From the NCBI GenBank assembly GCA_965644315.1, contig CBFFRQ010000008.1, positions 1 through 64,000 of the forward strand: a stretch of DNA of 64,000 nt, written 5' to 3'. Of this stretch, positions 1 to 45,751 are shown in pieces. Source of the DNA: Caecitellus pseudoparvulus (taxonomy: Eukaryota > Protista > Bigyra: Bicosoecida). Position numbers and translations under genes: made by a program. Numbering within the stretch: the stretch's first letter is position 1; the number at the start of each line of letters is the position of its first letter. The notes beneath the pieces were generated by a model. That model worked only from the letters and a program-made list of their open reading frames with translations, was not told where the DNA came from and did no database searches.

Positions 1-3000
1 TAACCCTAACCCTAACCCTAACCCTAACCCTAACCCTAACCCTAACCCTAACCCTAACCCTAACCCTAACCCTAACCCTAACCCTAACCCTAACCCTAAC
101 CCTAACCCTAACCCTAACCCTAACCCTAACCCTAACCCTAACCCTAACCCTAACCCTAACCCTAACCCTAACCCTAACCCTAACCCTAACCCTAACCCTA
201 ACCCTAACCCTAACCCTAACCCTAACCCTAACCCTAACCCTAACCCTAACCCTAACCCTAACCCTAACCCTAACCCTAACCCTAACCCTAACCCTAACCC
301 TAACCCTAACCCTAACCCTAACCCTAACCCTAACCCTAACCCTAACCCTAACCCTAACCCTAACCCTAACCCTAACCCTAACCCTAACCCTAACCCTAAC
401 CCTAACCCTAACCCTAACCCTAACCCTAACCCTAACCCTAACCCTAACCCTAACCCTAACCCTAACCCTAACCCTAACCCTAACCCTAACCCTAACCCTA
501 ACCCTAACCCTAACCCTAACCCTAACCCTAACCCTAACCCTAACCCTAACCCTAACCCTAACCCTAACCCTAACCCTAACCCTAACCCTAACCCTAACCC
601 TAACCCTAACCCTAACCCTAACCCTAACCCTAACCCTAACCCTAACCCTAACCCTAACCCTAACCCTAACCCTAACCCTAACCCTAACCCTAACCCTAAC
701 CCTAACCCTAACCCTAACCCTAACCCTAACCCTAACCCTAACCCTAACCCTAACCCTAACCCTAACCCTAACCCTAACCCTAACCCTAACCCTAACCCTA
801 ACCCTAACCCTAACCCTAACCCTAACCCTAACCCTAACCCTAACCCTAACCCTAACCCTAACCCTAACCCTAACCCTAACCCTAACCCTAACCCTAACCC
901 TAACCCTAACCCTAACCCTAACCCTAACCCTAACCCTAACCCTAACCCTAACCCTAACCCTAACCCTAACCCTAACCCTAACCCTAACCCTAACCCTAAC
1001 CCTAACCCTAACCCTAACCCTAACCCTAACCCTAACCCTAACCCTAACCCTAACCCTAACCCTAACCCTAACCCTAACCCTAACCCTAACCCTAACCCTA
1101 ACCCTAACCCTAACCCTAACCCTAACCCTAACCCTAACCCTAACCCTAACCCTAACCCTAACCCTAACCCTAACCCTAACCCTAACCCTAACCCTAACCC
1201 TAACCCTAACCCTAACCCTAACCCTAACCCTAACCCTAACCCTAACCCTAACCCTAACCCTAACCCTAACCCTAACCCTAACCCTAACCCTAACCCTAAC
1301 CCTAACCCTAACCCTAACCCTAACCCTAACCCTAACCCTAACCCTAACCCTAACCCTAACCCTAACCCTAACCCTAACCCTAACCCTAACCCTAACCCTA
1401 ACCCTAACCCTAACCCTAACCCTAACCCTAACCCTAACCCTAACCCTAACCCTAACCCTAACCCTAACCCTAACCCTAACCCTAACCCTAACCCTAACCC
1501 TAACCCTAACCCTAACCCTAACCCTAACCCTAACCCTAACCCTAACCCTAACCCTAACCCTAACCCTAACCCTAACCCTAACCCTAACCCTAACCCTAAC
1601 CCTAACCCTAACCCTAACCCTAACCCTAACCCTAACCCTAACCCTAACCCTAACCCTAACCCTAACCCTAACCCTAACCCTAACCCTAACCCTAACCCTA
1701 ACCCTAACCCTAACCCTAACCCTAACCCTAACCCTAACCCTAACCCTAACCCTAACCCTAACCCTAACCCTAACCCTAACCCTAACCCTAACCCTAACCC
1801 TAACCCTAACCCTAACCCTAACCCTAACCCTAACCCTAACCCTAACCCTAACCCTAACCCTAACCCTAACCCTAACCCTAACCCTAACCCTAACCCTAAC
1901 CCTAACCCTAACCCTAACCCTAACCCTAACCCTAACCCTAACCCTAACCCTAACCCTAACCCTAACCCTAACCCTAACCCTAACCCTAACCCTAACCCTA
2001 ACCCTAACCCTAACCCTAACCCTAACCCTAACCCTAACCCTAACCCTAACCCTAACCCTAACCCTAACCCTAACCCTAACCCTAACCCTAACCCTAACCC
2101 TAACCCTAACCCTAACCCTAACCCTAACCCTAACCCTAACCCTAACCCTAACCCTAACCCTAACCCTAACCCTAACCCTAACCCTAACCCTAACCCTAAC
2201 CCTAACCCTAACCCTAACCCTAACCCTAACCCTAACCCTAACCCTAACCCTAACCCTAACCCTAACCCTAACCCTAACCCTAACCCTAACCCTAACCCTA
2301 ACCCTAACCCTAACCCTAACCCTAACCCTAACCCTAACCCTAACCCTAACCCTAACCCTAACCCTAACCCTAACCCTAACCCTAACCCTAACCCTAACCC
2401 TAACCCTAACCCTAACCCTAACCCTAACCCTAACCCTAACCCTAACCCTAACCCTAACCCTAACCCTAACCCTAACCCTAACCCTAACCCTAACCCTAAC
2501 CCTAACCCTAACCCTAACCCTAACCCTAACCCTAACCCTAACCCTAACCCTAACCCTAACCCTAACCCTAACCCTAACCCTAACCCTAACCCTAACCCTA
2601 ACCCTAACCCTAACCCTAACCCTAACCCTAACCCTAACCCTAACCCTAACCCTAACCCTAACCCTAACCCTAACCCTAACCCTAACCCTAACCCTAACCC
2701 TAACCCTAACCCTAACCCTAACCCTAACCCTAACCCTAACCCTAACCCTAACCCTAACCCTAACCCTAACCCTAACCCTAACCCTAACCCTAACCCTAAC
2801 CCTAACCCTAACCCTAACCCTAACCCTAACCCTAACCCTAACCCTAACCCTAACCCTAACCCTAACCCTAACCCTAACCCTAACCCTAACCCTAACCCTA
2901 ACCCTAACCCTAACCCTAACCCTAACCCTAACCCTAACCCTAACCCTAACCCTAACCCTAACCCTAACCCTAACCCTAACCCTAACCCTAACCCTAACCC

Positions 3001-5218
3001 TAACCCTAACCCTAACCCTAACCCTAACCCTAACCCTAACCCTAACCCTAACCCTAACCCTAACCCTAACCCTAACCCTAACCCTAACCCTAACCCTAAC
3101 CCTAACCCTAACCCTAACCCTAACCCTAACCCTAACCCTAACCCTAACCCTAACCCTAACCCTAACCCTAACCCTAACCCTAACCCTAACCCTAACCCTA
3201 ACCCTAACCCTAACCCTAACCCTAACCCTAACCCTAACCCTAACCCTAACCCTAACCCTAACCCTAACCCTAACCCTAACCCTAACCCTAACCCTAACCC
3301 TAACCCTAACCCTAACCCTAACCCTAACCCTAACCCTAACCCTAACCCTAACCCTAACCCTAACCCTAACCCTAACCCTAACCCTAACCCTAACCCTAAC
3401 CCTAACCCTAACCCTAACCCTAACCCTAACCCTAACCCTAACCCTAACCCTAACCCTAACCCTAACCCTAACCCTAACCCTAACCCTAACCCTAACCCTA
3501 ACCCTAACCCTAACCCTAACCCTAACCCTAACCCTAACCCTAACCCTAACCCTAACCCTAACCCTAACCCTAACCCTAACCCTAACCCTAACCCTAACCC
3601 TAACCCTAACCCTAACCCTAACCCTAACCCTAACCCTAACCCTAACCCTAACCCTAACCCTAACCCTAACCCTAACCCTAACCCTAACCCTAACCCTAAC
3701 CCTAACCCTAACCCTAACCCTAACCCTAACCCTAACCCTAACCCTAACCCTAACCCTAACCCTAACCCTAACCCTAACCCTAACCCTAACCCTAACCCTA
3801 ACCCTAACCCTAACCCTAACCCTAACCCTAACCCTAACCCTAACCCTAACCCTAACCCTAACCCTAACCCTAACCCTAACCCTAACCCTAACCCTAACCC
3901 TAACCCTAACCCTAACCCTAACCCTAACCCTAACCCTAACCCTAACCCTAACCCTAACCCTAACCCTAACCCTAACCCTAACCCTAACCCTAACCCTAAC
4001 CCTAACCCTAACCCTAACCCTAACCCTAACCCTAACCCTAACCCTAACCCTAACCCTAACCCTAACCCTAACCCTAACCCTAACCCTAACCCTAACCCTA
4101 ACCCTAACCCTAACCCTAACCCTAACCCTAACCCTAACCCTAACCCTAACCCTAACCCTAACCCTAACCCTAACCCTAACCCTAACCCTAACCCTAACCC
4201 TAACCCTAACCCTAACCCTAACCCTAACCCTAACCCTAACCCTAACCCTAACCCTAACCCTAACCCTAACCCTAACCCTAACCCTAACCCTAACCCTAAC
4301 CCTAACCCTAACCCTAACCCTAACCCTAACCCTAACCCTAACCCTAACCCTAACCCTAACCCTAACCCTAACCCTAACCCTAACCCTAACCCTAACCCTA
4401 ACCCTAACCCTAACCCTAACCCTAACCCTAACCCTAACCCTAACCCTAACCCTAACCCTAACCCTAACCCTAACCCTAACCCTAACCCTAACCCTAACCC
4501 TAACCCTAACCCTAACCCTAACCCTAACCCTAACCCTAACCCTAACCCTAACCCTAACCCTAACCCTAACCCTAACCCTAACCCTAACCCTAACCCTAAC
4601 CCTAACCCTAACCCTAACCCTAACCCTAACCCTAACCCTAACCCTAACCCTAACCCTAACCCTAACCCTAACCCTAACCCTAACCCTAACCCTAACCCTA
4701 ACCCTAACCCTAACCCTAACCCTAACCCTAACCCTAACCCTAACCCTAACCCTAACCCTAACCCTAACCCTAACCCTAACCCTAACCCTAACCCTAACCC
4801 TAACCCTAACCCTAACCCTAACCCTAACCCTAACCCTAACCCTAACCCTAACCCTAACCCTAACCCTAACCCTAACCCTAACCCTAACCCTAACCCTAAC
4901 CCTAACCCTAACCCTAACCCTAACCCTAACCCTAACCCTAACCCTAACCCTAACCCTAACCCTAACCCTAACCCTAACCCTAACCCTAACCCTAACCCTA
5001 ACCCTAACCCTAACCCTAACCCTAACCCTAACCCTAACCCTAACCCTAACCCTAACCCTAACCCTAACCCTAACCCTAACCCTAACCCTAACCCTAACCC
5101 TAACCCTAACCCTAACCCTAACCCTAACCCTAACCCTAACCCTAACCCTAACCCTAACCCTAACCCTAACCCTAACCCTAACCCTAACCCTAACCCTAAC
5201 CCTAACCCTAACCCTAAC
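1..5218 (+). repeat. Telomeric repeat array (TAACCC)n = (TTAGGG)n, about 870 copies; chromosome end
   Basis: Hexamer tandem array from base 1 to 5218, with the C-rich strand at the 5' end as expected for a left telomere. Confidence 0.99.
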
Positions 5219-15727: not shown

Positions 15728-16350
15728 CGTGTTTGCTCAAATACTGTACTCGGGGCCGGCGGGGAGCCCGATAGATCTTGCAAGCTTTGTACCCCTCCCT
15801 CTCACACACCATAGGCGCCATGACTCCTCAAGGAGCGTCCATTTCTCACTCCTGAGCTGCCTTCTTTCGATAAGCGTCATTCGCTCTAGCTCCTCCACAC
15901 CCCCGCAGGTCTTTTTCTCACTTCCATTTAACTATCACTTGCCATAATCAAGCCAATGCCGACGCACAAACAACAGTCAACTCTGGATAAATGCCTGCTG
16001 CCCTCCTATCCCCCAGGTCTGTCCTGTCGCTGCCTACTGGCTTTGCCTTCCTTCCTTCTCATCGAGTGCGGAAATCGGTTGCCAGCACAGGCAGATTCGC
16101 CTTCACACCTCCAGCCTGGAAGGTCAGGTTCAACGAAGCACTCAAGAAATACACAGTATACTATAGTTTACCTCTCTTTATGGCCTCTGCACCGGCTGCC
16201 TCAGCCGCTGCCTGCCCCCCCCACGATGCAGGAGTGGCTTCTGCACTCCCAGCTTCACAAGCCCAGCTTGGGCACCTGATTCCCGCAACTTTAGCACCTA
16301 CCAAGCCCCACTACCGTCCCTGCCCCGGAATCTACAAGACATTCAAGTCC

Positions 16351-17793
16351 ATGGAGGCTTCTAGCGGATCTGGAGCGCGCTTTCTCTGGCCTGCCCCAGC
16401 ACACACTTCGCTGCCTGACCCACCTCTACTTGCCTGCCCAACGCATCATCCCCACCTGTCACAGCTGGGGAGCGAACCGCCTGTTTCTGAACCACTCTCC
16501 ACTCTGACCCGTATCTTGCACGTTCCAACGGCTCCCAGGGCCCCCTATCGGCGGCGGCAGCGGGAGGCCAAGAGCGTGCTGCACTGGGGTCAGCGCAAAC
16601 TGCTGGTGGCTGAGGTGGAGTTCTTGACGCTCATGGCCGTGCCGGGGCAGCACGTAGTGTACGCAGGGGCTGCACCAGGCACACACATCCCCTTCCTGGC
16701 GCATCTGTTCCCCTCTCTAACTTTCCACTTGTACGACCCGGCGCCCTTCTCCATCGCATCGCGACACAACATCTCCATTCACCCGTCTTTCTTCAGTGTG
16801 TCCACGGCACGCCAGTGGAGTGATTTGAACACTCTTTTCATCAGCGACGTCCGTTCCGGGGACTGGCGAGCTCAAGACCCCGCAGGCATGGATGCCGTCG
16901 TGGCGGCGGACATGGCAGCTCAAGCTGACTGGGCGGAAGCCATGCAGCCCGCCGCGTCTCTGCTGAAGTTCAGACTACCGTACAGCGCAGGCACCACGCA
17001 GTACCTGGATGGAGTCCTCATGTTGCCAGTGTGGGGCCCGCCCACCACATCGGAGTGCAGACTCATCGTGCCGCGTGGCGCCGGGCATACAACTTGGGAC
17101 CACACGGTGCACAGCGAGGCCATGTTCGCGTTCAACACGCGCCAGCGCTTGACAGCCTTCCGTCATGGAGTGCAAGCACGGGGCGTGGATGGTTGCTACG
17201 ACTGTGCAGCAGAAGTGCTGGTGTGGGAGCGCTTCCTGCGCAGCTCGTGGCATCCGACCTCCCCTGCGGAGCTAGGTATGGAAGACAGCATCGCCCAGCT
17301 CATGCACCTAGCCAGCGTGCACTGCTCGCCACACGGACTGCGCCACCTGGACACCCGTGTCAGGGCCGATCGCTGGTATCATGTATCGCACTACGATGCG
17401 GCCGCCGGGACTGTCCAGTACAGCGAGCCGCCGCCACCCACCAAACGGCCCAGGCGTCTTGGCATGCATTGTTCCACATCAACGGCGCCCGCCACCGCCG
17501 CGCCCGCCACCGCCGCGCCTGCCGCCTCCACGGCCACCTCCACGGCCACCACCGCCACGGCCGCCACCTCGGCCGCCCTGAGGGGGGTCGCGTCGGGGGA
17601 CGCCACCCCGCCCCTCCACACGCAGTCCCTGCACCCCCCGCAGGCCCATCTTGCCAACTGTCTTGGCCTGCAGGCTGGGCGGCTCGGGGGCGCCACAATC
17701 AGCGGTGGCAAAGTCGTTGCACACTGCCACGAGGTCGGCCGTGCTCCACCCGAGGCGCTTCATGTTGCCGTTGTAGAAGCCCAGCATGGCTGA
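16351..17793 (+). CDS. VP39-like cap-specific mRNA (nucleoside-2'-O)-methyltransferase (poxvirus poly(A) polymerase regulatory subunit family)
   Basis: HWGQRKLL..EVEFL, VVYAGAAPGTHI, LFISDVRS, LLKFRLPY and TTSECRL give the K-D-K-E tetrad. Start uncertain (ORF open from 15991). Confidence 0.88.
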   Translation: MEASSGSGARFLWPAPAHTSLPDPPLLACPTHHPHLSQLGSEPPVSEPLSTLTRILHVPTAPRAPYRRRQREAKSVLHWGQRKLLVAEVEFLTLMAVPGQHVVYAGAAPGTHIPFLAHLFPSLTFHLYDPAPFSIASRHNISIHPSFFSVSTARQWSDLNTLFISDVRSGDWRAQDPAGMDAVVAADMAAQADWAEAMQPAASLLKFRLPYSAGTTQYLDGVLMLPVWGPPTTSECRLIVPRGAGHTTWDHTVHSEAMFAFNTRQRLTAFRHGVQARGVDGCYDCAAEVLVWERFLRSSWHPTSPAELGMEDSIAQLMHLASVHCSPHGLRHLDTRVRADRWYHVSHYDAAAGTVQYSEPPPPTKRPRRLGMHCSTSTAPATAAPATAAPAASTATSTATTATAATSAALRGVASGDATPPLHTQSLHPPQAHLANCLGLQAGRLGGATISGGKVVAHCHEVGRAPPEALHVAVVEAQHG

Positions 17794-19183: not shown

Positions 19184-19435
19184 CTTCCGCCGCCGCCACC
19201 ACCGCCACCACGGCCACCACCACCCTGGCCGCCTCGCCGACGGCGGTTGCGAGCCCTCTTGCTGGCAGACTGCCTCCCGCCAGAAGACTGGCTGGAGCCA
19301 GGCGGGCCCTCAGCCGGCCGCCGTTGACCGCCCAAGCGGGGGAAACTTGCTGTGCAGGAAGAGTGGAGTGAAGCCTTGCAATTATTCGCAATACCAGACA
19401 TACCCCGCAGGTGTTGCGCACTCACCGTCAGCCAT
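17479..19435 (-). CDS. DEAD-box RNA helicase (MSS116/Has1-like group) with RGG tail
   Basis: AKTGTGKT, SPTRELA, TPGRL, DEAD, SAT, ARGMD and HRLGRTAR motifs. ATG at 19435 with an in-frame intron 19425-19350. Confidence 0.95.
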
Positions 19436-20001
19436 GGTTCAGGCTGGTGGAAACGCTACCTGTGTGGACGGGAAAATGGTTGACGTGAAACGCCGGCTCC
19501 AAGCGCACGCAGTGCCGCAAGCACAGCGTGCAAGAGCAGGGCACAGAGCCGGGCTACTCGCAACGCAAGACACTTCTGCCTTGAAAACCCAAGCCCTACA
19601 CCATCCTTCTAAGCTCCCTCGTGCCTCAGGCACGGAGCAGTGCCCACGCCCTAAACGTTCTGGCTGACTGTTGCCGCTGTGGTGAAACGCCGCCAAGCCA
19701 GGTGCAGGCGTCACCGCGTCAGCAAAGGCACACAGTCCCCAAACAGCCAACTGACATGCTCCTATACTAGAGCTCTCCCCGTGTGAGTCACCCTGTCATG
19801 CAGTTCTACTCACGGAAAAAACGGGCGGTTGCGATGAAAGCGGTGTGACACGAAGATGCGAAGGGGGGCTGGCTCGCGAGACACAATGCGAGCGGAAGGA
19901 ATGAAGTGTCGCTGTGCTCCAGCTACCCACTCGTCAGTGTCTGCATTCTCAGACTACTCAACCCCCCAAAAACTTCCACCCCAGCCCCCCCCCTCGCCGC
20001 C

Positions 20002-23000
20002 TCAGCCCACGACAACAACAGCCGAGGGACTGGAGCCAAACGTTTCAGCGCAGTACATCTCCTCAGCCCGCGCAGGCGGCGCAGTGAAGCGGCCTGGAGT
20101 GCTGGCCAGGGCAACATATGTCATCTCGTGCCTGCCTGCCGGCAGGTTTGTGCAGAACATGCCCACGCGGTCTGGCCACTTGGACTGAGCGTCAGGGGAC
20201 AGCGGCGAAACACGACCCACACCAAAGCTGCCGCGGCCAAAGCTCACGTCGGTGCTGAGGTCCTCCCGCAGCGGCTCCAGCCCTGCAGGCAAGTGGTCCA
20301 CAATGGCGACGTGCTGCCGTGCCTCGGAGTTCTCAATGAGCAGTCGCACCTGCACCTTCAAACCAGCCCGCACCGCCACATCCACACCCTCGGCATCGAC
20401 GGGCACACTCCCCGTGGCGCCCCCTCGGAGGCGCTGCACTGTGTACTGCCGCTGGACACGGAAGCCTCTGTCCAGCGCTGAGCGCTGCAGTTCGGAGCTG
20501 ACAGTGCGCAGGGCGACACGGAAGAACAGGCGGCTAGGCGTTGGAGACGGCGTTTCTGGGTTCAGCGCATCCTTGGCAAGCACGACGCGGAACTCCCGAG
20601 CGGGCGCCTCACCCGAGGCAGTCGCCGCAGCGGTCTGCGCGTCACCTTCCTGCAGCAGGTTGGACAGGAAGCCAGTGCTCACCCTGGTCACCTTGCTGTC
20701 CAGGCTGTGCCCAGAAAATTCCTCTGCCGCGACAAGCCGAGGGCCCACCCACACACGAGCCTTGGCCTGAGGCGGCTGCGACTCGAACACGGCAAAGTAC
20801 TCAGCCAGGGCGAACACCGCCCAACCATTGGCGTGTGTCGTGGACCAGGAGCCAGCGCGTGTCCGGTGTGCCAGCAGCCCCTTGACACTGCGCGTGATGG
20901 CGTCGTCTGACGTGCACCGGGTCTTGAGCTGTGCCAGCAAGGCGAGCGCGCAGGACCGAGCTGGGTGATCCAGCAGCGCACCTGTGCCGTCTGGCACCTT
21001 GTTCCCGTAAAATGTCTGCGAGGCAGTGTGCCCAGCGTGGTTGGCGAGCGCCGCTGCCAACACCGGCAACGCTTCCGCACAGGCAGCCAGATGCTCCTTC
21101 AACTCCTCCACATGTGTCATGGGTGCAGGTGTTGAAGTCGCAGCCTCCCCCTCTGCGCCTGCGTCACTTGCAGGATACGCCACGGCGCCGGCAGCCCGTG
21201 CTGCTGCTTCAGCCTCTGCCGCTGCCCGTGCCGCAGCGTCCATGTCCTCGGCAACCGCCTGCTCCACGCCCACAGTCCCGTCATCCGTGAACAACACCAG
21301 CATGAACAGTGACAGCGTCTCACTGTCCATGCGAGACAGGTTCAAGTCGGCTGCCGCTGCGCCGCCACCAGCCTGGGCGGAGAGGTACCGGAGAGTTCCC
21401 AGGGCCAGGCGCCTGCACTGCAACAGCTCCAACGCAACTGTGCTCTTGGGCCGCGTTGGCGGTCCAGCAGCTGGCTCCTGGTCTCCCGCACCCGCTTCAG
21501 CCTTGAGTTCTTGCAGCAAAAAGAGGCTAGTGCAGTACAACGCCTGCGCCAGCATGCGCAAGGATGCCTGTGCCGACAGCTTTCCGCTGAACAGCGTGTC
21601 AAAGGCGGTGATTCGAGGGGGCTGCCGGCCCTGTGCAACCAGCTTGTCGTGCTCCTGGATGCAGCTCTTCATGGCAGACAGCACATTGCGCAGGTACTTG
21701 GAAAGGCCCGAGGTGAGCTGGGCGGGCACCTGGAAACCATGCTGAAGCGCCACGGCGCAGGCAAGGGCAGCTGACATGCTGGTGATGGGCAGGGAGCGAG
21801 ACCTAGACGAGCCACCAAAGCCAGAGGAAGTGGTGCTGAGCCGTCCCCAGAAAGTGAAGCCGCCATCAGACTGCTGGCATGCCCACAGCATCTGCAAGTC
21901 CTCTTCCACGCGGCAGGCGATGGCGTCCCGGCTGGGCCACGTTTCGGGTTTGAACGCGCCGGCAGCAGGGCTGATGGCAGCCAGCGCCAGGATGCGGCTG
22001 CTGCGCTGCTCCACGCAGTCGTATGGGTAGTCTGCCAAGTCCGCAACAGCATCCCCAATGCACTGCAAGATGGAGGAAGAAGCCTCCACCACGAGGCCAC
22101 CGTCGTTCAACAGGACACTCTGTGGCAGATGCAGGGGCACAGCCAGCGCAGTGCCATCACCCGCCAGTTCGCAGTACGACGCGAACGACGACACAGCTGT
22201 GGGGAGGCGCACGGGCAGCGTGCTGAGCTGGCAATCCCGAATGGCTTCGCGATCAGGCAGTGGCTGCAGGTCCTTCCCCACAGGCACGCCTTCCACGAGC
22301 ACACGCACGTCTGCAGGGGGCAGGCGGTGCACGCCTCGGATGGCAATGCTGCCCCCTGCAGCTCGCACCACCCGCGCAGCCACGGTCATGCGCGCCTGAC
22401 TCTTGGGGGGCACAATCGTGCTCACGCCAGCTGCCCCGTGCGCCTTGTCTGGGGTGTAGCCCTGGTCTCCTTCTGCCGGGCCGGCGGATCCCAGGAGCAC
22501 GCCATCCGCTGCGAGGACTGCCTTCACTGCCAGAGTATCGGACGTGTTGTTGCTCACGACCACTGGCATATCAAACACATCACCGTAGGAGAGGAAGCGA
22601 GGGAATGCAGGTCGGACTTCCAGTGGCAGGGCCGTCTCCACAGCCGTGCTGCCGACCTTGCCAGACACGCCATGGCGCAGCAAAGACGATAGCCCATCCC
22701 CGTCTGGAGCAGGAGGTGCCACGGCGGTGGCCATGAATCGGATGGACGTCAGCGAGTCGCTGAGCTTCACAGGCACAGTCACCCGCCCTGTTGCGTCCGT
22801 CACGAGGCCAGGACAAAAGGCAACAAGTGGCCCGAAGTCCTGTCGCATATCCACGCTGTCAGAGGGCGGGGCGGGGGGGCGGTAGTTCGGGTCCCCTCCG
22901 CCGCGCAGACGCAGCACCAGGTGCAGGGTGGTATCGTTCTGGATGTTGTAGTCCAACAGCGTGCGGCCGTCCTCCAGCTGCTTCCCAGCGAAGATCAGGC

Positions 23001-26000
23001 GCTGCTGATCAGGAGGGATGCCCTCCTTGTCCTGGATAACGTACTTCAGCGACTCGATGGTTTCACTCGAGTCAATGTCGATGGTAATGGTCTTGCCTGT
23101 CAAGGTCTTCACATACAGGCGGATGCCCATACCGTAGCCCCCACCTCTCCGTGCAGGTCGCCATGTGTGCCGCACGCGATATCCAACAACCACAAACGTG
23201 GTGTCTGGCACCTGCCTCCAGCTGGAGCCAGCCGTGTACCGGCGCCAATACTGCAGCACGCTCTCGAGCGATGTCGGGTCCATGTCCACGAGGGGCGTGC
23301 GGAGACTGTAATGGTTACTCGTCAGCTGCCCGCCCTCTACCAGCCCCAGGATGGCCTCATCCACCCCCACCAGCGACACGATGGCACCCTCCACGCCGCG
23401 CCCTGCGGGGTCTTTCACCTGCACTGTAACTGGAATCTCCTGCCCAGGCTTGGCTTGGCTGTCCGATACACCCACGCACACAGACAGGGCAGCTGAAATG
23501 CCTGAGGCATCCTCCGCCGATTCCTGCTGAGAGGCACCGGAGCTAGCCGCTGCGCCGGCCAAGGCATCGGCTGGGTGCTTGCCAAGGGATGCAGTCAGCG
23601 CCTTCGCGTCGGCCTTCACCACGTCAATCAGCCCATCCCGCTTTCGGGGCCCCGTCTGCAAGACTGTGCGGCCCACATTGCAAAAGCCAGGGGCAGACAA
23701 CACGACAGTCACTGGAACGCCAAACGCCGTCACATGGTCAAGTTTCATGTTCAAGTCATATGTTGCGAAGCCAGCATCCCTAGTGCTGTCCACATCCCCA
23801 GCGCTCTTGACGTTCGCAGAGGTCAGCGTGAAGTCATGAGCTTGCAGGTTGGACTGTGACCCGTACACTGCTCGGCCATGCACAACGCCGATGCTGCCGG
23901 ATGCCAGCTCTTGCGACAGCACCTTGCCAGCCTTGATCCTTGCGACGAGAGGCTGGGCAGGAGTAGAGGGGGCACTGGCCACCTCAACGCTCACTGTGCC
24001 TTGCTTGAGCTTGTGCTGCAGTTCGACGGCGCTCAGCACTTCAGGTGCCGGCTGCGGTGCAGGGACAGCCGGCTCGGGCCCTCGGTAGACTCGTTCCGAA
24101 ATGGTAACTTGTTGTGAGACCTGTGAGACGCGCCCACAGTCATCCGCCGCGACGGCAGATACCGTGATGGCGCCGTGATCTTGCAGCGGCAGCACCGCGT
24201 CCACAGGCCCAGCATCGCTGGAAACAACCACAGCCGAGGCGATGTGGCCCGGCGCCTTCACATTTTCCTTCGTGCCTTTCTTGTTGTCGTACATCGCAAT
24301 GGCTCCATGCTCGAACAGTGCTGCATCAGCTGCCGTGGAGAGGGGGCTAATGGAGTCTTCTTGGGCCGTTGCCAACGACAGATGCAGCACGTTGCAGGTA
24401 CTTCCCAGCTGGGAAGCAAGAGCCACCACGACATCGTGCACGATGTCACAGCCCCGCACCTGCACCGTCACGCTTTGCTTGCGCTGGGGGTTAGCGGCCC
24501 TACTGCGGATGTCGCTGGTGTCCACCTCCACGTCCATGGGCGTCAGAAGCCAGGGGTCTTCCTGTGCAGCAAGGTTGGCACGGGCACGGGCGTCCTCGAA
24601 CACCTTCGTGCGCAGGGTGGACACTGACTCCTGCTTCGCCACCCGCACAGGCACGCCGCCCACCAAGTTCCCGTCCAAGTCCTGCACAATGACTTGCACC
24701 TTCAGGGACGGCTTCTGCCCTGGCACACGCACGATGCAGTCGGAGCTTGAAGAGGCGCGCAGCGCCACGTATGAGCTGCAGGGGTGCACTGTGATGGGCT
24801 GCAGGGGCCCGCTGGACCGCATTTGGAAGCTCAAGTCCTGCACTTCCACTGACGGCGTGATCCGAATGGGGCACGCGGGGAAGAACTTCATCGGCAGGGC
24901 AATCTGGTACGTGGCCTTTCCGTCCTTGTCCAGGGTAGCTTCCCGCCTGAGGTCAGTCAGCTCGCTCTGGAAGGACGCTGAGCTGGAGGGGTACGTGTAG
25001 CTTGCAGTGGAAAAGGCCCCACCAGGGACGGGCGGCAGGCGAACATCCTGCGTTTCGCAGTCTGCTGTCCAGAAGGCAGTGGCAGAGGCCAGCGGCGCAC
25101 CGCTCAGGTACTTTGCCTCTGTCTCCAACGTCAGAATGTCGCCCGCAACCACGTGCTTCTTGGCGGCGGTGTCAGCAGACCACGCGATGCCGACAGACAG
25201 CTCGGGCGGCCGGAATGTGGCGAGCTTGAAGGAGTGCGTGGCTTTCGCAGAGAATTCACCGGAGAGGCATTTGCCATCTGGCTGCACGAGGGTCAGGGAG
25301 ATGGTGTTCACGCCCAGCTTGGCCATGGCTTCCCCAGGCAGCTTCAGGCGCAGGGAGAAGTCCCCCGCGGCGCCGACTGGAATGACACCCTTCTCGAAAT
25401 CCTGCCCGTCTTTCGCGTGCACCCACTGCACCTTCCACTGCCCGTCAGCGCCCTTCCACTGCGGCAGGCTTCCGGGCGGGACAATGGCACCGTCTGGCGC
25501 ACGGGCCAGCGCATACCCCCACACAGCCATGTCCTCCCCCGGCTGATACAACTGCCGGTCATCAAACACGTTCAAGTTGTAGCTGACGCTTCGGGAGGGC
25601 TGGGCCGTGACGAGGTTGCGCAGGTGGAAGAAGCGGGCTGCACTGCCCTCGGGAGCAGCAGGGAAACGCATGGGGCGAGGCGCAGCGATGGTGCGTGGCG
25701 CCTGCTCGTCGCTCGGCTCGGGCGGGGCGATGGACAGGGACACAAGGTCTTCCATGGACACGCCAGGCGGCAGCAGTGCTCCATACACGCCACACTCCTT
25801 GCCGTCCACCTTCTCATACCAGGCAGAGCAGCGCTGGGCCACGGCGGGGTTGTCCTCCTCTGCGGGTGGCACGACGCGCACCATGCCGTCTGCCGCGGTG
25901 CTCAGCAACCAACCTCCTTCCGGTGTCGGCTGCACACTTGCCGCTTCGAATGTGAACCCGCTGGGCATGGGGGGCAACAGGAGGGATGCGCCTTCTGCCG

Positions 26001-28571
26001 GCGCCCCCGACACGCCGTCCACCAAGCGAATGTCAGTGTGCCGTTCACATGGCAGGATGACCATGTCCACCTGCTTCAGCTGCAGCCACAGACTGCGTGG
26101 GTTCAGCGCCAGAGGGTCCTCTTCCGACTCCTCCATCCCCTCGGGGAACACGGTGTGGGTGTCTCCCGGCACCAGTGCCAGCACGGCGTGGCAACCCGCC
26201 TCCCGAACAACCGGCATGTGCTTTGCCACAAACTCAGCCGCTCCTGTCAGCGTACCCTGCCACTTGTTGGGCTCCCACGCACCCTGAGCTGCCTCCAGGG
26301 GCAGGCTGGCAATCACCTCGCCTGGCAGTGCAGAGGCATCCTTGTATCGAATGGCCCCAACATGGGCAGCGTAGGCAGGGAAGTCTGCCAGAGTCACACG
26401 CCGCAGCTGCAGCTCCATGGTCCGGATGTTCCGGGAGGTCACACCCACGATGGAGGAGAGGGACTCCTCGGTGCCCAGCAGAGGCGCAAAGGGCAGCACG
26501 CCAGCAAGGTGCTTGGCAGACTCAAACTGCTTCGCGTGGGCGCCGCCGACGCTGCAGGAGCCCCTCCAAGAAGGCGGTGCGTCAGCTGGCTCTTCCAGCG
26601 CCAGCGGAACTTGGACCGTGAATGCCACGTCTTCAGGCATCTGCTGCCCGAAAGTGTCGATCACGTCCTCGCAGCGCAAGCGCACGTCATACGATTCCCC
26701 GCGGGTGAACTTGCAGTTCAGCAGGGAAACGTACGTGCCATGCACTGAGAGCCTGGACCGCGACGTGTCTTCCAGAGGAACGTGCGGCTCCGTGACGATG
26801 TCGGGCGGGTTCACTTCATACTCGTCGCGCAGGGGGTTGTTGAAACACAGCTCCCGGGGCCCCTTGGTCAGCACAGGCTGAACTGGCTGCAGCAGCTGCA
26901 GGGGCGCTGGCGTAGAGAAGGAGTACGTCGAGAATGCAGTGGAAGCGACAGGCCCAAGGATAGACTTCATGCCGGGGTACAGCACGATGGTGATGTTGGA
27001 GTTCAGGGGGAACCCGTCATCTGCCATGATGGCCATGGGCATGACAGGCAGTCCAGGGCAGTCCTTGCCCTCCAGCTGCTCCTGGAACAGGTCAGAGGTC
27101 GTTTCGTAGTCCAACAGCCGCACAGTGCATGGCAAGAGGGTGCTTGGCTCTGGCTCGGCGTCACTTTCCAGAGCAGCTGTCGCAGAGGCGTCCAGCTCAT
27201 CCGAGGGGGCTTCAGTCACAGGTAGGCCGCAGCTTTTCTCCAGGGCCTGCACGATGGAAGGGTGCGCTGTCGGCTTCCGCATCACGTCGTCATTGAACTT
27301 GACATCGTCCGCTTTGCGGGGGCGGACGAATGCCCGCACTACGGGGAGCGAGTCCAGCGGCTGTGATGGTACCAGGATCAACGTTTGTTTGCCATGAGTG
27401 ATGTGATCGGCTTCCCAGTTTCCCTGGTAAAGCCGGGTGATGTCGGCGGGCTTGGTGGAGAAGGTGAATGTGACATCTTCCTCTAACACATTTCCCAGCA
27501 CTGACTTGAGCGTGGAGGGCTGCTCCTGCAGCACTGCTTGGGCACGCAGCTTGACAGTGTACTCAGTGGCAGGCGTGAAGGGCTCTTGTCCGCTGAACCA
27601 GTCTGACATGCCCATGGCGCCGCCATCGGCTCCCCCGCAGGTGATGCGAAGCGTGCGGTCACCGCGCCACTTGAAGTTCAGTGGCCCAGGTGCCTGCGGT
27701 TCAATGCTCAGGTGGGCCTTGAGCAGGTCTTCCCCCACATCCACTACGCCAGAGATCATGGCTGCGCTGAACTTGATAGAGATGTCCATCACTGGGGCAT
27801 GTTGCGGTCCAGTGGGCGTCGTGCCAATCACACGCAGCGGCTCAGTCAGCGCTGGTTGCAAGAGGTCCTCCGGGATAGCTTCTTGCTCCAGAACTTCCGC
27901 AGAGGGCAGCAGCCCTGCCGCTATGTCTGCTTCCAACTCCTGCAGGCGCCTTTTGAACTCCTCCCCGGCCAGCGCGGCATGGCCGGCCAAGGAGGAGGGC
28001 GCAGTTGGCATCAACGCGAGCGACCTTTGCACGTCCTCCAACGGAAGTGGCTCGACAGCTGCAGGCTGCTGCACCGCTGCTGAACCCTTGCCTGCTGTGG
28101 CTTGGATCTGTGGTGAAAAGTGGAAGGGCGTGGCTGCATCTGCACAAAAACCAATGCGGAGCATTTGGCGTGGTGGCCTACCTGCGTCGCCACGACGGAT
28201 CGCAAGAGGCCGCGCAAATGAATGAGGTGGGGGGCCCGTGCGTCCGTCTCGGGAACAAGAACCATGTGGGACCGCGTTCCACAGCGGCAGCCCATCTGGG
28301 CGAGTGTGACGTCGGTGCGCGTTGCCGCCTGCCCATTGATGACCAAGCGCATTTGCACAGCAGTTTGCCGTAAGAAATCCGTCACTTGCAGAACTGTCGC
28401 TCCCTCTGGCAGCTGCAGCGAAGCGTGGGAAAAGGAGACGCCGTCCTCATTCAGGACGTGCAGCTCCACAAATGCTGCATCAGCTCCGTTGGAAGTCAAG
28501 CTGTCTGGCAGTGCTGGCAGCTCAAGCGTGCTGGGGTTGGCCTCGCTGGCCGTGCTCACACCTTGCCCCAT
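20002..28571 (-). CDS. Bacterial-type alpha-2-macroglobulin / thioester protein with ubiquitin in the bait region (~2831 aa)
   Basis: Exon 1 28571-28182 (MGQGVS...), intron 28181-28108, exon 2 to 20002. Motifs: Ig-like domains, [11 protein letters not shown] (MG2), [37 protein letters not shown] and [18 protein letters not shown] (bacterial MG10-like end). Confidence 0.9.
22897..23124 (-). other. Embedded 76-aa ubiquitin domain ending LRLRGG
   Basis: [14 protein letters not shown]...[11 protein letters not shown]; 58/76 identical to canonical ubiquitin by manual alignment; in frame within the A2M ORF. Confidence 0.97.
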
Positions 28572-44111: not shown

Positions 44112-45751
44112 ATGTTGACTTCCGCTGTCGCCACAGCCGCGCGAAGCGTGCGCCTTTCCACAGCAGCTGCAGCTACCTCTCGAGGTGCTGCAGGCTTGGT
44201 GGCGTCCATGAGCACTAACGCCGCAAACCTCAAGGTGTGTGCGCCGTCGCCCGGCCGGGCGCCCTCCAGCCAAATTTTGCGCTGCAGGCCACCTGCACCT
44301 CGCTCACACCGCCCGCTGGATGCAGATGCCTGAGGAGCACGAATCCAACGCACGAGGCTACGTGCGCAAGTTCCCCATGTCCATCGCCAAGGCTTCAGGG
44401 GTCACCATCACAGGTGAGGCGGCCGGCTGCCCAGCACGCGCACGCACTCGCCCCGCCTCACTTCCCCTGCGCCACCCCCACAGATGTCGAGGGCAACGAG
44501 TACTTCGACTGCCTGCAGTGCGCTGGCACTCTGGCCCTGGGGCACAACCACCCCGTGGCAGTGGAGGCCGCCAAGTCCTTCCTGGACAGCGGCTCCCCCA
44601 TGCAGGTGCTGGACCTGAACTCGCCCTACAAGAACGCCTTCATGAAGGAGCTGCTGGGGCTGCTGCCTGACAACCTGACCCGCCTGCACTTCGCCTCCCC
44701 TGCCGGCACGGACTGCTTGGATGCCGCCGTGAAGCTGTGCAAGGTGGCCACTGGCCGCCGCGCCGTCGTCTCCTTCCACGGCGGCTACCACGGCATGGGG
44801 CAGAGCACCATGGCCATGATGGGCAACCTGAACACCAAGTCCAACGTGCCGGGGCTGATGGGGGACACCTACTTCCTGCCCTTCCCCTACCAGTACCGCC
44901 AGCCCTTCGGCATCAAGGACCCCGAGGAGGCTGACGCGGCTGTCATGGCGTACATCGAGACCGCCCTGCGCGATGACGAGTCGGGCATTCCCAAGCCCGC
45001 CTGCGTGGTGGTGGAGGCCATCCAGGGCGAGGGCGGCGTGCAGCCCATGTCCCCGTGGGCTATGCGCGAGCTGCGCCGCATCACCAAGGAGCAAGACATC
45101 CCCCTCGTCATCGATGAGGTGCAGGCGGGCTTCTGCCGCTCCGGCCGTGTCTTCGCCTTCCAGCACTCCGACGAGGGCCCAGAGGTGTCCGCGCCCATCG
45201 CCTCTGATGCCAAGTACGGCGGCATCAAGCCCGACGTCGTGTGCATGAGCAAGGCTGTGGGCGGCGGCATGCCCCAGGCAGTGGTGGCGTTCTCCGAGGA
45301 GCTGAACAAGTGGGCGCCCGCTGCCCACACCGGCACTTTCCGCGGGAACCAGATCTCCTTCGCCACCGGCACAGCCACCCTGCAGTACATGCAGGAGCAC
45401 AAGCTGTGGGAGAAGGCGGAGCGCCAGGGCGAGTGGCTGCAGAAGCGCTTGAACGAGCTGGCAGAGGAGACCGGCATCATCGGCGACGTGCGTGGGCGTG
45501 GGCTCATGGTGGGCGCAGAGTTGGTGCGCAAGGATGCGACGGACCACAACGGCGTGCCCATGCCAGACGGCGAGGCGGCCGCGGCGGTGCAGGCACACGC
45601 CTTCAAGGAGAAGAAGCTGATCATCGAGAAGGGCGGCCGCCACGGCGGCGTGCTGCGTTTCCTGCCCCCCCTCACCGTCACTGACGAGGAGTTGGAGCGC
45701 TGCGTGGACATGTTCAGCGACAGCGTCCGAGCAGTGGCTGCCTCTAGGTAA
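44112..45751 (+). CDS. ectB: Diaminobutyrate--2-oxoglutarate aminotransferase (class III PLP; EctB function inferred) with presequence
   Basis: Introns 44235-44325 and 44414-44483. ESNARGYVRKFP, AGTLALGHNHP, EAIQGEGG, IDEVQAG, SKAVGGG (PLP Lys) and HTGTFRGNQ motifs. Confidence 0.9.

Follow-up and report, generated by a model that had tools for sequence, protein, structure and literature searches.

When the bait region of an alpha-2-macroglobulin (A2M) protein is cut, the protein collapses and its thioester couples to a nearby lysine. What, then, is a complete ubiquitin doing in the middle of an A2M-like protein of the flagellate Caecitellus pseudoparvulus? The gene that raises this question lies on the minus strand of the first 64,000 nucleotides of contig CBFFRQ010000008.1 (C8 in our numbering; assembly GCA_965644315.1), a stretch that we analysed as a whole and call the window. 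We find that its product is a bacterial-type (COG2373/YfhM-like) A2M, that alignment and structure modelling both place the ubiquitin in the loop that serves as bait, inside a split macroglobulin (MG) domain, and that the design recurs in 15 further proteins, making 16 in total. Sequence comparisons support the view that a cleavable ubiquitin C-terminus is under selection across distant eukaryotes, and we give an even chance to what we consider the best reading, namely that the protein is a cytosolic thioester trap fired when a deubiquitinase (DUB) cleaves after G76.

Position of the ubiquitin in the protein

The gene and the parts of its product, in window coordinates, are these:

28446 to 20005, minus strand: stop-free frame of 2814 codons (open-reading-frame listing)
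28182-28571, minus strand: exon 1, 130 codons, protein start MGQGVS
28108-28181, minus strand: inferred 74-nt phase-0 GT-AG intron, needed to reach the ATG at 28571
20002-28107, minus strand: exon 2, the A2M body in a single frame, 2701 codons and stop
24835-25569, minus strand: MG2 and bMG5 macroglobulin domains (weak Pfam matches, below cut-off)
23347-23364, minus strand: VDEAIL strand, closing the first half of the bait-bearing split MG domain (alignment and model)
23137-23154, minus strand: ARRGGG motif, in a disordered linker ahead of the ubiquitin (sequence and model)
22897-23124, minus strand: bait ubiquitin, in frame, with an LRLRGG tail and then G-D-P (PF00240, E 8e-30)
22834-22896, minus strand: 17-residue stub after the GG, and RQDF, which starts at 22845 (position and motif)
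22522-22818, minus strand: A2M domain PF00207 (Pfam)
22006-22017, minus strand: CVEQ thioester motif inside YPYDCVEQ (sequence and alignment)
20782-22068, minus strand: helical thioester domain (TED) with alanine-rich insertions (structure model and structural matches)
20053-20466, minus strand: bMG10 C-terminal domain with conserved EEMY (Pfam E 6e-22 and alignment)

Pfam gives the order MG2, bMG5, end of A2M_BRD, ubiquitin, A2M and bMG10, and the chain of MG domains, the TED and the C-terminal MG10 follow one another as in bacterial-type A2Ms; Pfam detected neither an anaphylatoxin (ANA) nor a Ras domain in the protein, and no TED_complement match was found in the genome. An earlier note, made from the letters alone, had described an in-frame ubiquitin at 23124-22897 with its patch and LRLRGG intact and G-D-P behind it, flanked by VDEAIL and RQDF, and an intact CVEQ at 22017-22006, all of which our analysis bears out; VDEAIL starts at 23364 and RQDF at 22845. 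YPYDCVEQ and EEMY (the protecting tyrosine and the MG10 Met/Tyr) both align to Salmonella A2M, and the first tyrosine of YPYDCVEQ aligns with the residue mutated in Salmonella A2M Y1175G.

The nearest non-eukaryotic relatives are bacterial A2Ms of about 2000 residues with Big_5 domains, and the top 150 of a search of representatives were solely bacterial kin, the entry P0001 and one near-identical fragment. Searched against the PDB, a single C-terminal sequence found no match and a profile was required; the family profile, from a 108-row alignment, matched Salmonella and E. coli A2M with E values of 1e-61 to 1e-59, with TEP1 and human A2M far behind. The Salmonella chain is aligned over residues 842-927 and 971-1645, and a ubiquitin matches the profile in the gap at 928-970; in E. 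coli A2M the disordered bait comprises residues 923-942 (PMC4498604). An AlphaFold model of the C-terminal 1200 residues (29-row alignment with some bacterial rows left out; mean pLDDT 76, pTM 0.57), whose best Foldseek matches are the bacterial A2Ms 4u48, 5a42 and 4ziq, predicts a well-folded ubiquitin (pLDDT about 90) with disorder on both sides, between the halves of the split MG domain. The profile alignment and the model agree on the bait-loop position that the earlier note had proposed. A metagenome scan returned three distant loci, none with ubiquitin.

The bait ubiquitin is internal, lacks Met1 and is not near-identical to cellular ubiquitin: it shares 59 of 76 residues with the polyubiquitin of the same genome (17 differences, including M1 to I, K29 to V and K63 to N) and 190 of 228 nucleotides, the longest exact run being 31 nt. 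L8, I44, H68 and V70 are kept, and the I44 and I36 patches and the LRLRGG tail are intact. With 38 of 228 bases different the insert must be old, and this divergence excludes a mis-joined polyubiquitin copy or a recent insertion from it. An assembly chimera, or a ubiquitin that is spliced out, might be suspected from the fact that a 97-98% identical contig of another assembly begins 16 nt past the ubiquitin. Set against a matching insertion in 15 other proteins, several of them from transcriptomes, the differences from polyubiquitin just given and a single open frame, the probability of such an artefact is close to nil, and we regard the chimera as ruled out by recurrence and divergence. The contig in question (L004; CAJNDU010021488.1 of GCA_905221625.1) matches window 19208-22881 and belongs to an assembly labelled Symbiodinium sp. 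KB8, which, judging from this identity, probably contains the present flagellate from co-culture.

Exon 1 probably encodes a divergent ubiquitin-like domain (UBL) without GG; its atlas leads are to ubiquitin families (0.88-0.89, a weak test), and its fold model is of low confidence (pLDDT 44) and uninformative. The upstream exon and candidate intron occur at the matching place in two orthologous loci (L003 and L027), and the predicted spliced product has 2831 residues (by arithmetic; the exons were searched separately). A hydropathy test found no signal peptide or lipoprotein anchor at the N-terminus. We considered conserved N-myristoylation at MGQGVS and rejected it, as the possible site is absent in two orthologues.

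Conservation of the cleavable end and the thioester

Looking for A2Ms with ubiquitin in other protists, as had been suggested for this locus, returned the 15 further proteins, whose database names give domains only. They comprise Acanthamoeba castellanii ELR17837, Balamuthia mandrillaris KAL6080571 and Luapelamoeba hula; a marine amoeba transcriptome cluster with an MMETSP0417 transcript, which we take to be Mayorella; dictyostelid members from Heterostelium, Acytostelium, Cavenderia, Synstelium and Polysphondylium together with two dictyostelid-like entries; two environmental (flagellate) relatives of the window gene; and two Hint-containing forms. The window protein forms a group with the Hint-ubiquitin form and the two environmental relatives (support 99). 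The ubiquitin-bait members are not one clade in the free tree, and a forced single clade is not rejected (p-AU 0.29); a second tree left out 25-29 near-duplicate or very long rows.

The baits of the two Hint-containing forms read Ub-GG/C-Hint-N/S-Ub2 (P0458, L026:23-7900) and ARRGGAG/C-Hint-N/M-Ub (P0461, a sister protein in which ARRGG likewise precedes the insert), slashes marking the junctions; by analogy with ciliate BUBL proteins these baits are possibly self-processing. To judge from its sequences, the wider family carries bait inserts other than ubiquitin alone, namely Hint with ubiquitin and, in a separate lineage, a permuted Ras. One dictyostelid-like member (P0234) has a PAK-type kinase (PBD and kinase) in front, as a true fusion or a merged gene model.

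The thioester motif CxEQ is intact in 16 of 16 ubiquitin-bait members (15 of 15 aligned, and P0458), compared with 81 of 93 bacterial relatives, and all 16 bait ubiquitins end in RLxGG. R42, R72, L73, G75 and G76, and also Q41, are invariant in the 15 aligned baits, and the residue that follows the GG (P1') is always small (G in 12, S in two and A in one). The GG is retained both in the baits at 72-91% ubiquitin identity (9/9) and in those at 31-40% (7/7). As controls, GG is kept by 21% of the internal ubiquitin domains of other long proteins at 70-90% identity, by 7% at 50-70% and by 6% below 50%; the N-terminal UBLs of the same A2M proteins lack it; and RLxGG occurs in one of 254 bacterial baits. 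These three controls speak for the importance of the GG. Inheritance of the GG from the scaffold was considered and rejected: bacterial baits are Gly-rich, with GG within 35 residues in 113 of 254, yet RLxGG is found in the single case just mentioned. The GG sits 9-23 residues ahead of the RxxF segment in 15 of 16 members, the Arg of RxxF is invariant in 108 sequences, and, from its position and motif, RQDF probably corresponds to the alpha'NT plug (in human A2M, R732/F735). Among the nine near-canonical baits, positions 6-12, 34-42, 44-47, 49-53 and 67-76 are invariant, positions 1-3 and 16-29 vary, and seven have lost K63 and six K29; the dictyostelid baits, 31-40% ubiquitin-like, end in RLSGG.

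These patterns bear on whether the ubiquitin is cut at all, as it might stay uncleaved and act as a lure or handle that ubiquitin receptors or the proteasome bind, or as a decoy against ubiquitin-modifying effectors (those acting at R42 or Q40, for instance), with ordinary proteases cutting the disordered linkers. The I44 and I36 surfaces conserved in the near-canonical copies, the invariance of R42 and Q41 and the long disordered linker upstream of the ubiquitin would suit such a role, and the permuted-Ras version, which has no CxEQ match, shows that folded inserts at this position need not be protease substrates. However, UBLs that serve only for binding lose the GG, as the 6-21% retention elsewhere and the N-terminal UBLs illustrate, and the dictyostelid copies without I44 and H68 still have RLxGG; we hold a non-cleaved ubiquitin to be unlikely. 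Alternatively, the true targets might be viral maturation proteases that cut after GG, with the ubiquitin fold as a presentation scaffold and stopper. Adenain/Ulp1-like proteases have LxGG specificity, and LxGG is common to all members, the dictyostelid RLSGG included. Against this proposal, the entire DUB-binding face is conserved in nine members, and the Peptidase_C48 matches in the genome are three in number, none shown to be viral; we consider it very unlikely.

Possible capture of a protease or processing by the host

A hydrophobic N-terminus was seen in none of 14 eukaryotic sequences tested (maximum 1.44), as against 78% of bacterial sequences at values of at least 2.0, and no signal peptide was found among members with an assessable N-terminus. 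The non-hydrophobic N-termini point to the cytosol, where DUBs act; a second, N-terminal UBL is clear in the amoebozoan members. To our knowledge, every characterised A2M-family protein works outside the cytosol and has a disordered loop or an anaphylatoxin domain for its bait.

In A2M the alpha'NT segment, which carries a conserved Arg and Phe, runs through a channel and slips back upon bait cleavage; complement has its folded ANA domain cut beforehand at the N-terminal end, and this cut does not set the protein off (PMC9352918). A2M has also been retargeted by replacing its bait (PMC8267569). In the trap that we propose, a DUB or other LxGG-cutting protease would dock on the bait ubiquitin and cut after G76, the stub of 9-23 residues would retract and fire the thioester, and the cutting enzyme would be covalently caught. 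A cut upstream would leave the folded ubiquitin in place as a stopper, much as with the ANA domain of complement C3, making the trap selective, and the ubiquitin and UBL modules may steer the adduct towards the proteasome or autophagy. The likely quarry would be DUBs that serve as effectors for intracellular bacteria or for viruses in phagotrophic protists, the ubiquitin being an integrated decoy. Bacteria that infect amoebae have unusually large repertoires of DUBs (PMC10643670), which, taken with the phagotrophic habit of the hosts, favours a defensive decoy. We advance more tentatively, at rather less than even chance, the proposal that phagotrophic protists possess in this way an intracellular, complement-like defence in which a thioester protein of bacterial origin uses a ubiquitin decoy to capture pathogen DUBs.

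Several observations weigh against a trap of this kind. The host genome has 39 matches to the ubiquitin-specific protease (USP) domain, in roughly 30 genes, which makes constitutive cutting possible, and a linear ubiquitin fusion is ordinarily cleaved as it is being translated; unless something shields the bait, the trap would go off as soon as it is made. In P0458 a GG-ended ubiquitin is followed by Hint and then by a GG-less second ubiquitin beside the plug, an arrangement that breaks the stopper logic. The dictyostelid baits, with I44 changed to F or L, H68 to N and R74 to S or F, would be poor substrates for canonical USPs; the gene is single-copy with no expansion, unlike many arms-race genes; the 16 related members amount to roughly six independent lineages; and domain packing in our model is unreliable at a pTM of 0.57. 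The bait-replacement study also indicates that the thioester can self-conjugate bait lysines (PMC8267569).

The chief rival of DUB-triggered capture is processing by the host's own DUBs, whereby the GG would be a maturation or timing site and its cleavage would leave the protein in two chains or constitutively activated. In that case the N-terminal half would have a free ubiquitin GG at its end, and E1 might activate it as a very large modifier. Consistent with this, the host has its roughly 30 USP genes, the P1' residues G, S and A are stabilising under the N-end rule, and self-cleaving Hint domains have been recruited to the bait in two members. Nevertheless, a cut 9-23 residues before RxxF falls where cleavage triggers collapse and not maturation, the maturation cut of complement is N-terminal to the folded domain, and a constitutively spent thioester is unlikely to stay conserved in 16 of 16 members. 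On balance host processing seems to us fairly unlikely. The earlier note had inferred a DUB trap or sensor, and the bait placement, the thioester motif and the conserved cleavable C-terminus speak for it; on present data, capture of foreign DUBs is not distinguished from cleavage by the host's own.

If the trap proposal is true, the thioester-trap principle extends to cell-autonomous immunity through a cytosolic member triggered by ubiquitin-specific proteases, and amoebae gain a candidate defence against the many DUB effectors that Legionella, chlamydiae and giant viruses possess. The protein would be a natural activity-based DUB probe, its bait slot a swappable sensor (ubiquitin, Hint-ubiquitin or Ras), and it may offer a ready-made covalent trap with which to identify or inhibit DUBs. 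Should host DUBs be the trigger, it would still be an undescribed ubiquitin-gated thioester switch. The design is open to direct testing in Acanthamoeba and dictyostelids.

Genomic setting and known systems

The A2M gene is present once in an intron-poor genome of 30.6 Mb, in which a search for an A2M paralogue found none; the GC content of the window is about 64%. The 18S gene of this genome measures 1697 nt and appears to be of the Cafeteria type of bicosoecids. A 5.2-kb CCCTAA telomere array fills window 1-5218, its inner end lying about 15 kb from the A2M gene, and genes close to the locus include IFT57, kinesin and TBC. An open frame at 15991-17793 (plus strand) with a match to PF01358 (poxvirus VP39-like cap methyltransferase, E 5e-14) overlaps the 3' end of a DEAD-box helicase frame on the opposite strand, and a class-III aminotransferase lies at 44237-45751 (plus strand). 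We also note an open frame of 1517 codons in which two divergent ubiquitin-like domains stand in tandem (G000:C55:100698-101135, minus strand) and many long environmental proteins from ENA contigs that are made up of large numbers of diverged ubiquitin repeats, frequently accompanied by kinase domains (P0348-P0449); most of these repeats lack GG.

Literature searches on A2M and ubiquitin in protists, in which subscription journals are poorly covered, found no paper, and a 2026 review of A2M nowhere mentions protists or ubiquitin. The ubiquitin-baited design is apparently undescribed, and the nearest published protein is Dictyostelium CPRas2, a horizontally acquired COG2373 protein with a permuted Ras inside it (Elias and Novotny, PMC2430557). 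That paper, in which the words bait and ubiquitin are absent, mentions a second Dictyostelium COG2373 protein without the GTPase (EAL60755.1). The published CPRas2 insertion appears to sit in the bait, and a Ras bait is possibly a decoy for Ras-targeting toxins. CPRas2 and Tieghemostelium KYQ91426 (P0323) resemble the window protein in that a eukaryotic COG2373 scaffold holds a folded domain of signalling type in the interval that ubiquitin occupies, and differ from it in that their insert is a circularly permuted Ras, which the window protein lacks. KYQ91426 has no CxEQ match, and the Ras-bearing protein takes a separate place among bacterial sequences, at the end of a long branch (SH-aLRT 98).

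With polyubiquitin, the Ub-eS31 and Ub-eL40 fusions and ciliate BUBL proteins, which combine ubiquitin with Hint domains (PMC8616854), the window protein shares an in-frame ubiquitin ending in LRLRGG, and the Hint-ubiquitin junctions of BUBL recur in two of its relatives. Unlike ubiquitin fusion precursors, it would release no free monomer from one cut, its ubiquitin being internal and without Met1. With E. coli YfhM/ECAM and Salmonella SaA2M it shares the domain order, split MG bait domain, CxEQ, TED and MG10 EEMY, and its identity to metagenomic bacterial proteins is about 30-40% in conserved blocks. It differs from bacterial A2Ms in lacking a signal or lipoprotein anchor, in having an N-terminal UBL and in carrying a folded ubiquitin where they have a disordered Ala/Gly/Pro-rich loop. 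Complement C3/C4 and animal A2M/TEP proteins are secreted, are built on an animal-type scaffold (about 11% structural identity) and have an ANA domain in place of ubiquitin, but they offer a parallel to the arrangement proposed here: in complement, too, a folded domain of about 76 residues occupies the bait position, a specific protease cuts it at its C-terminus, and the alpha'NT RxxF plug comes after it.

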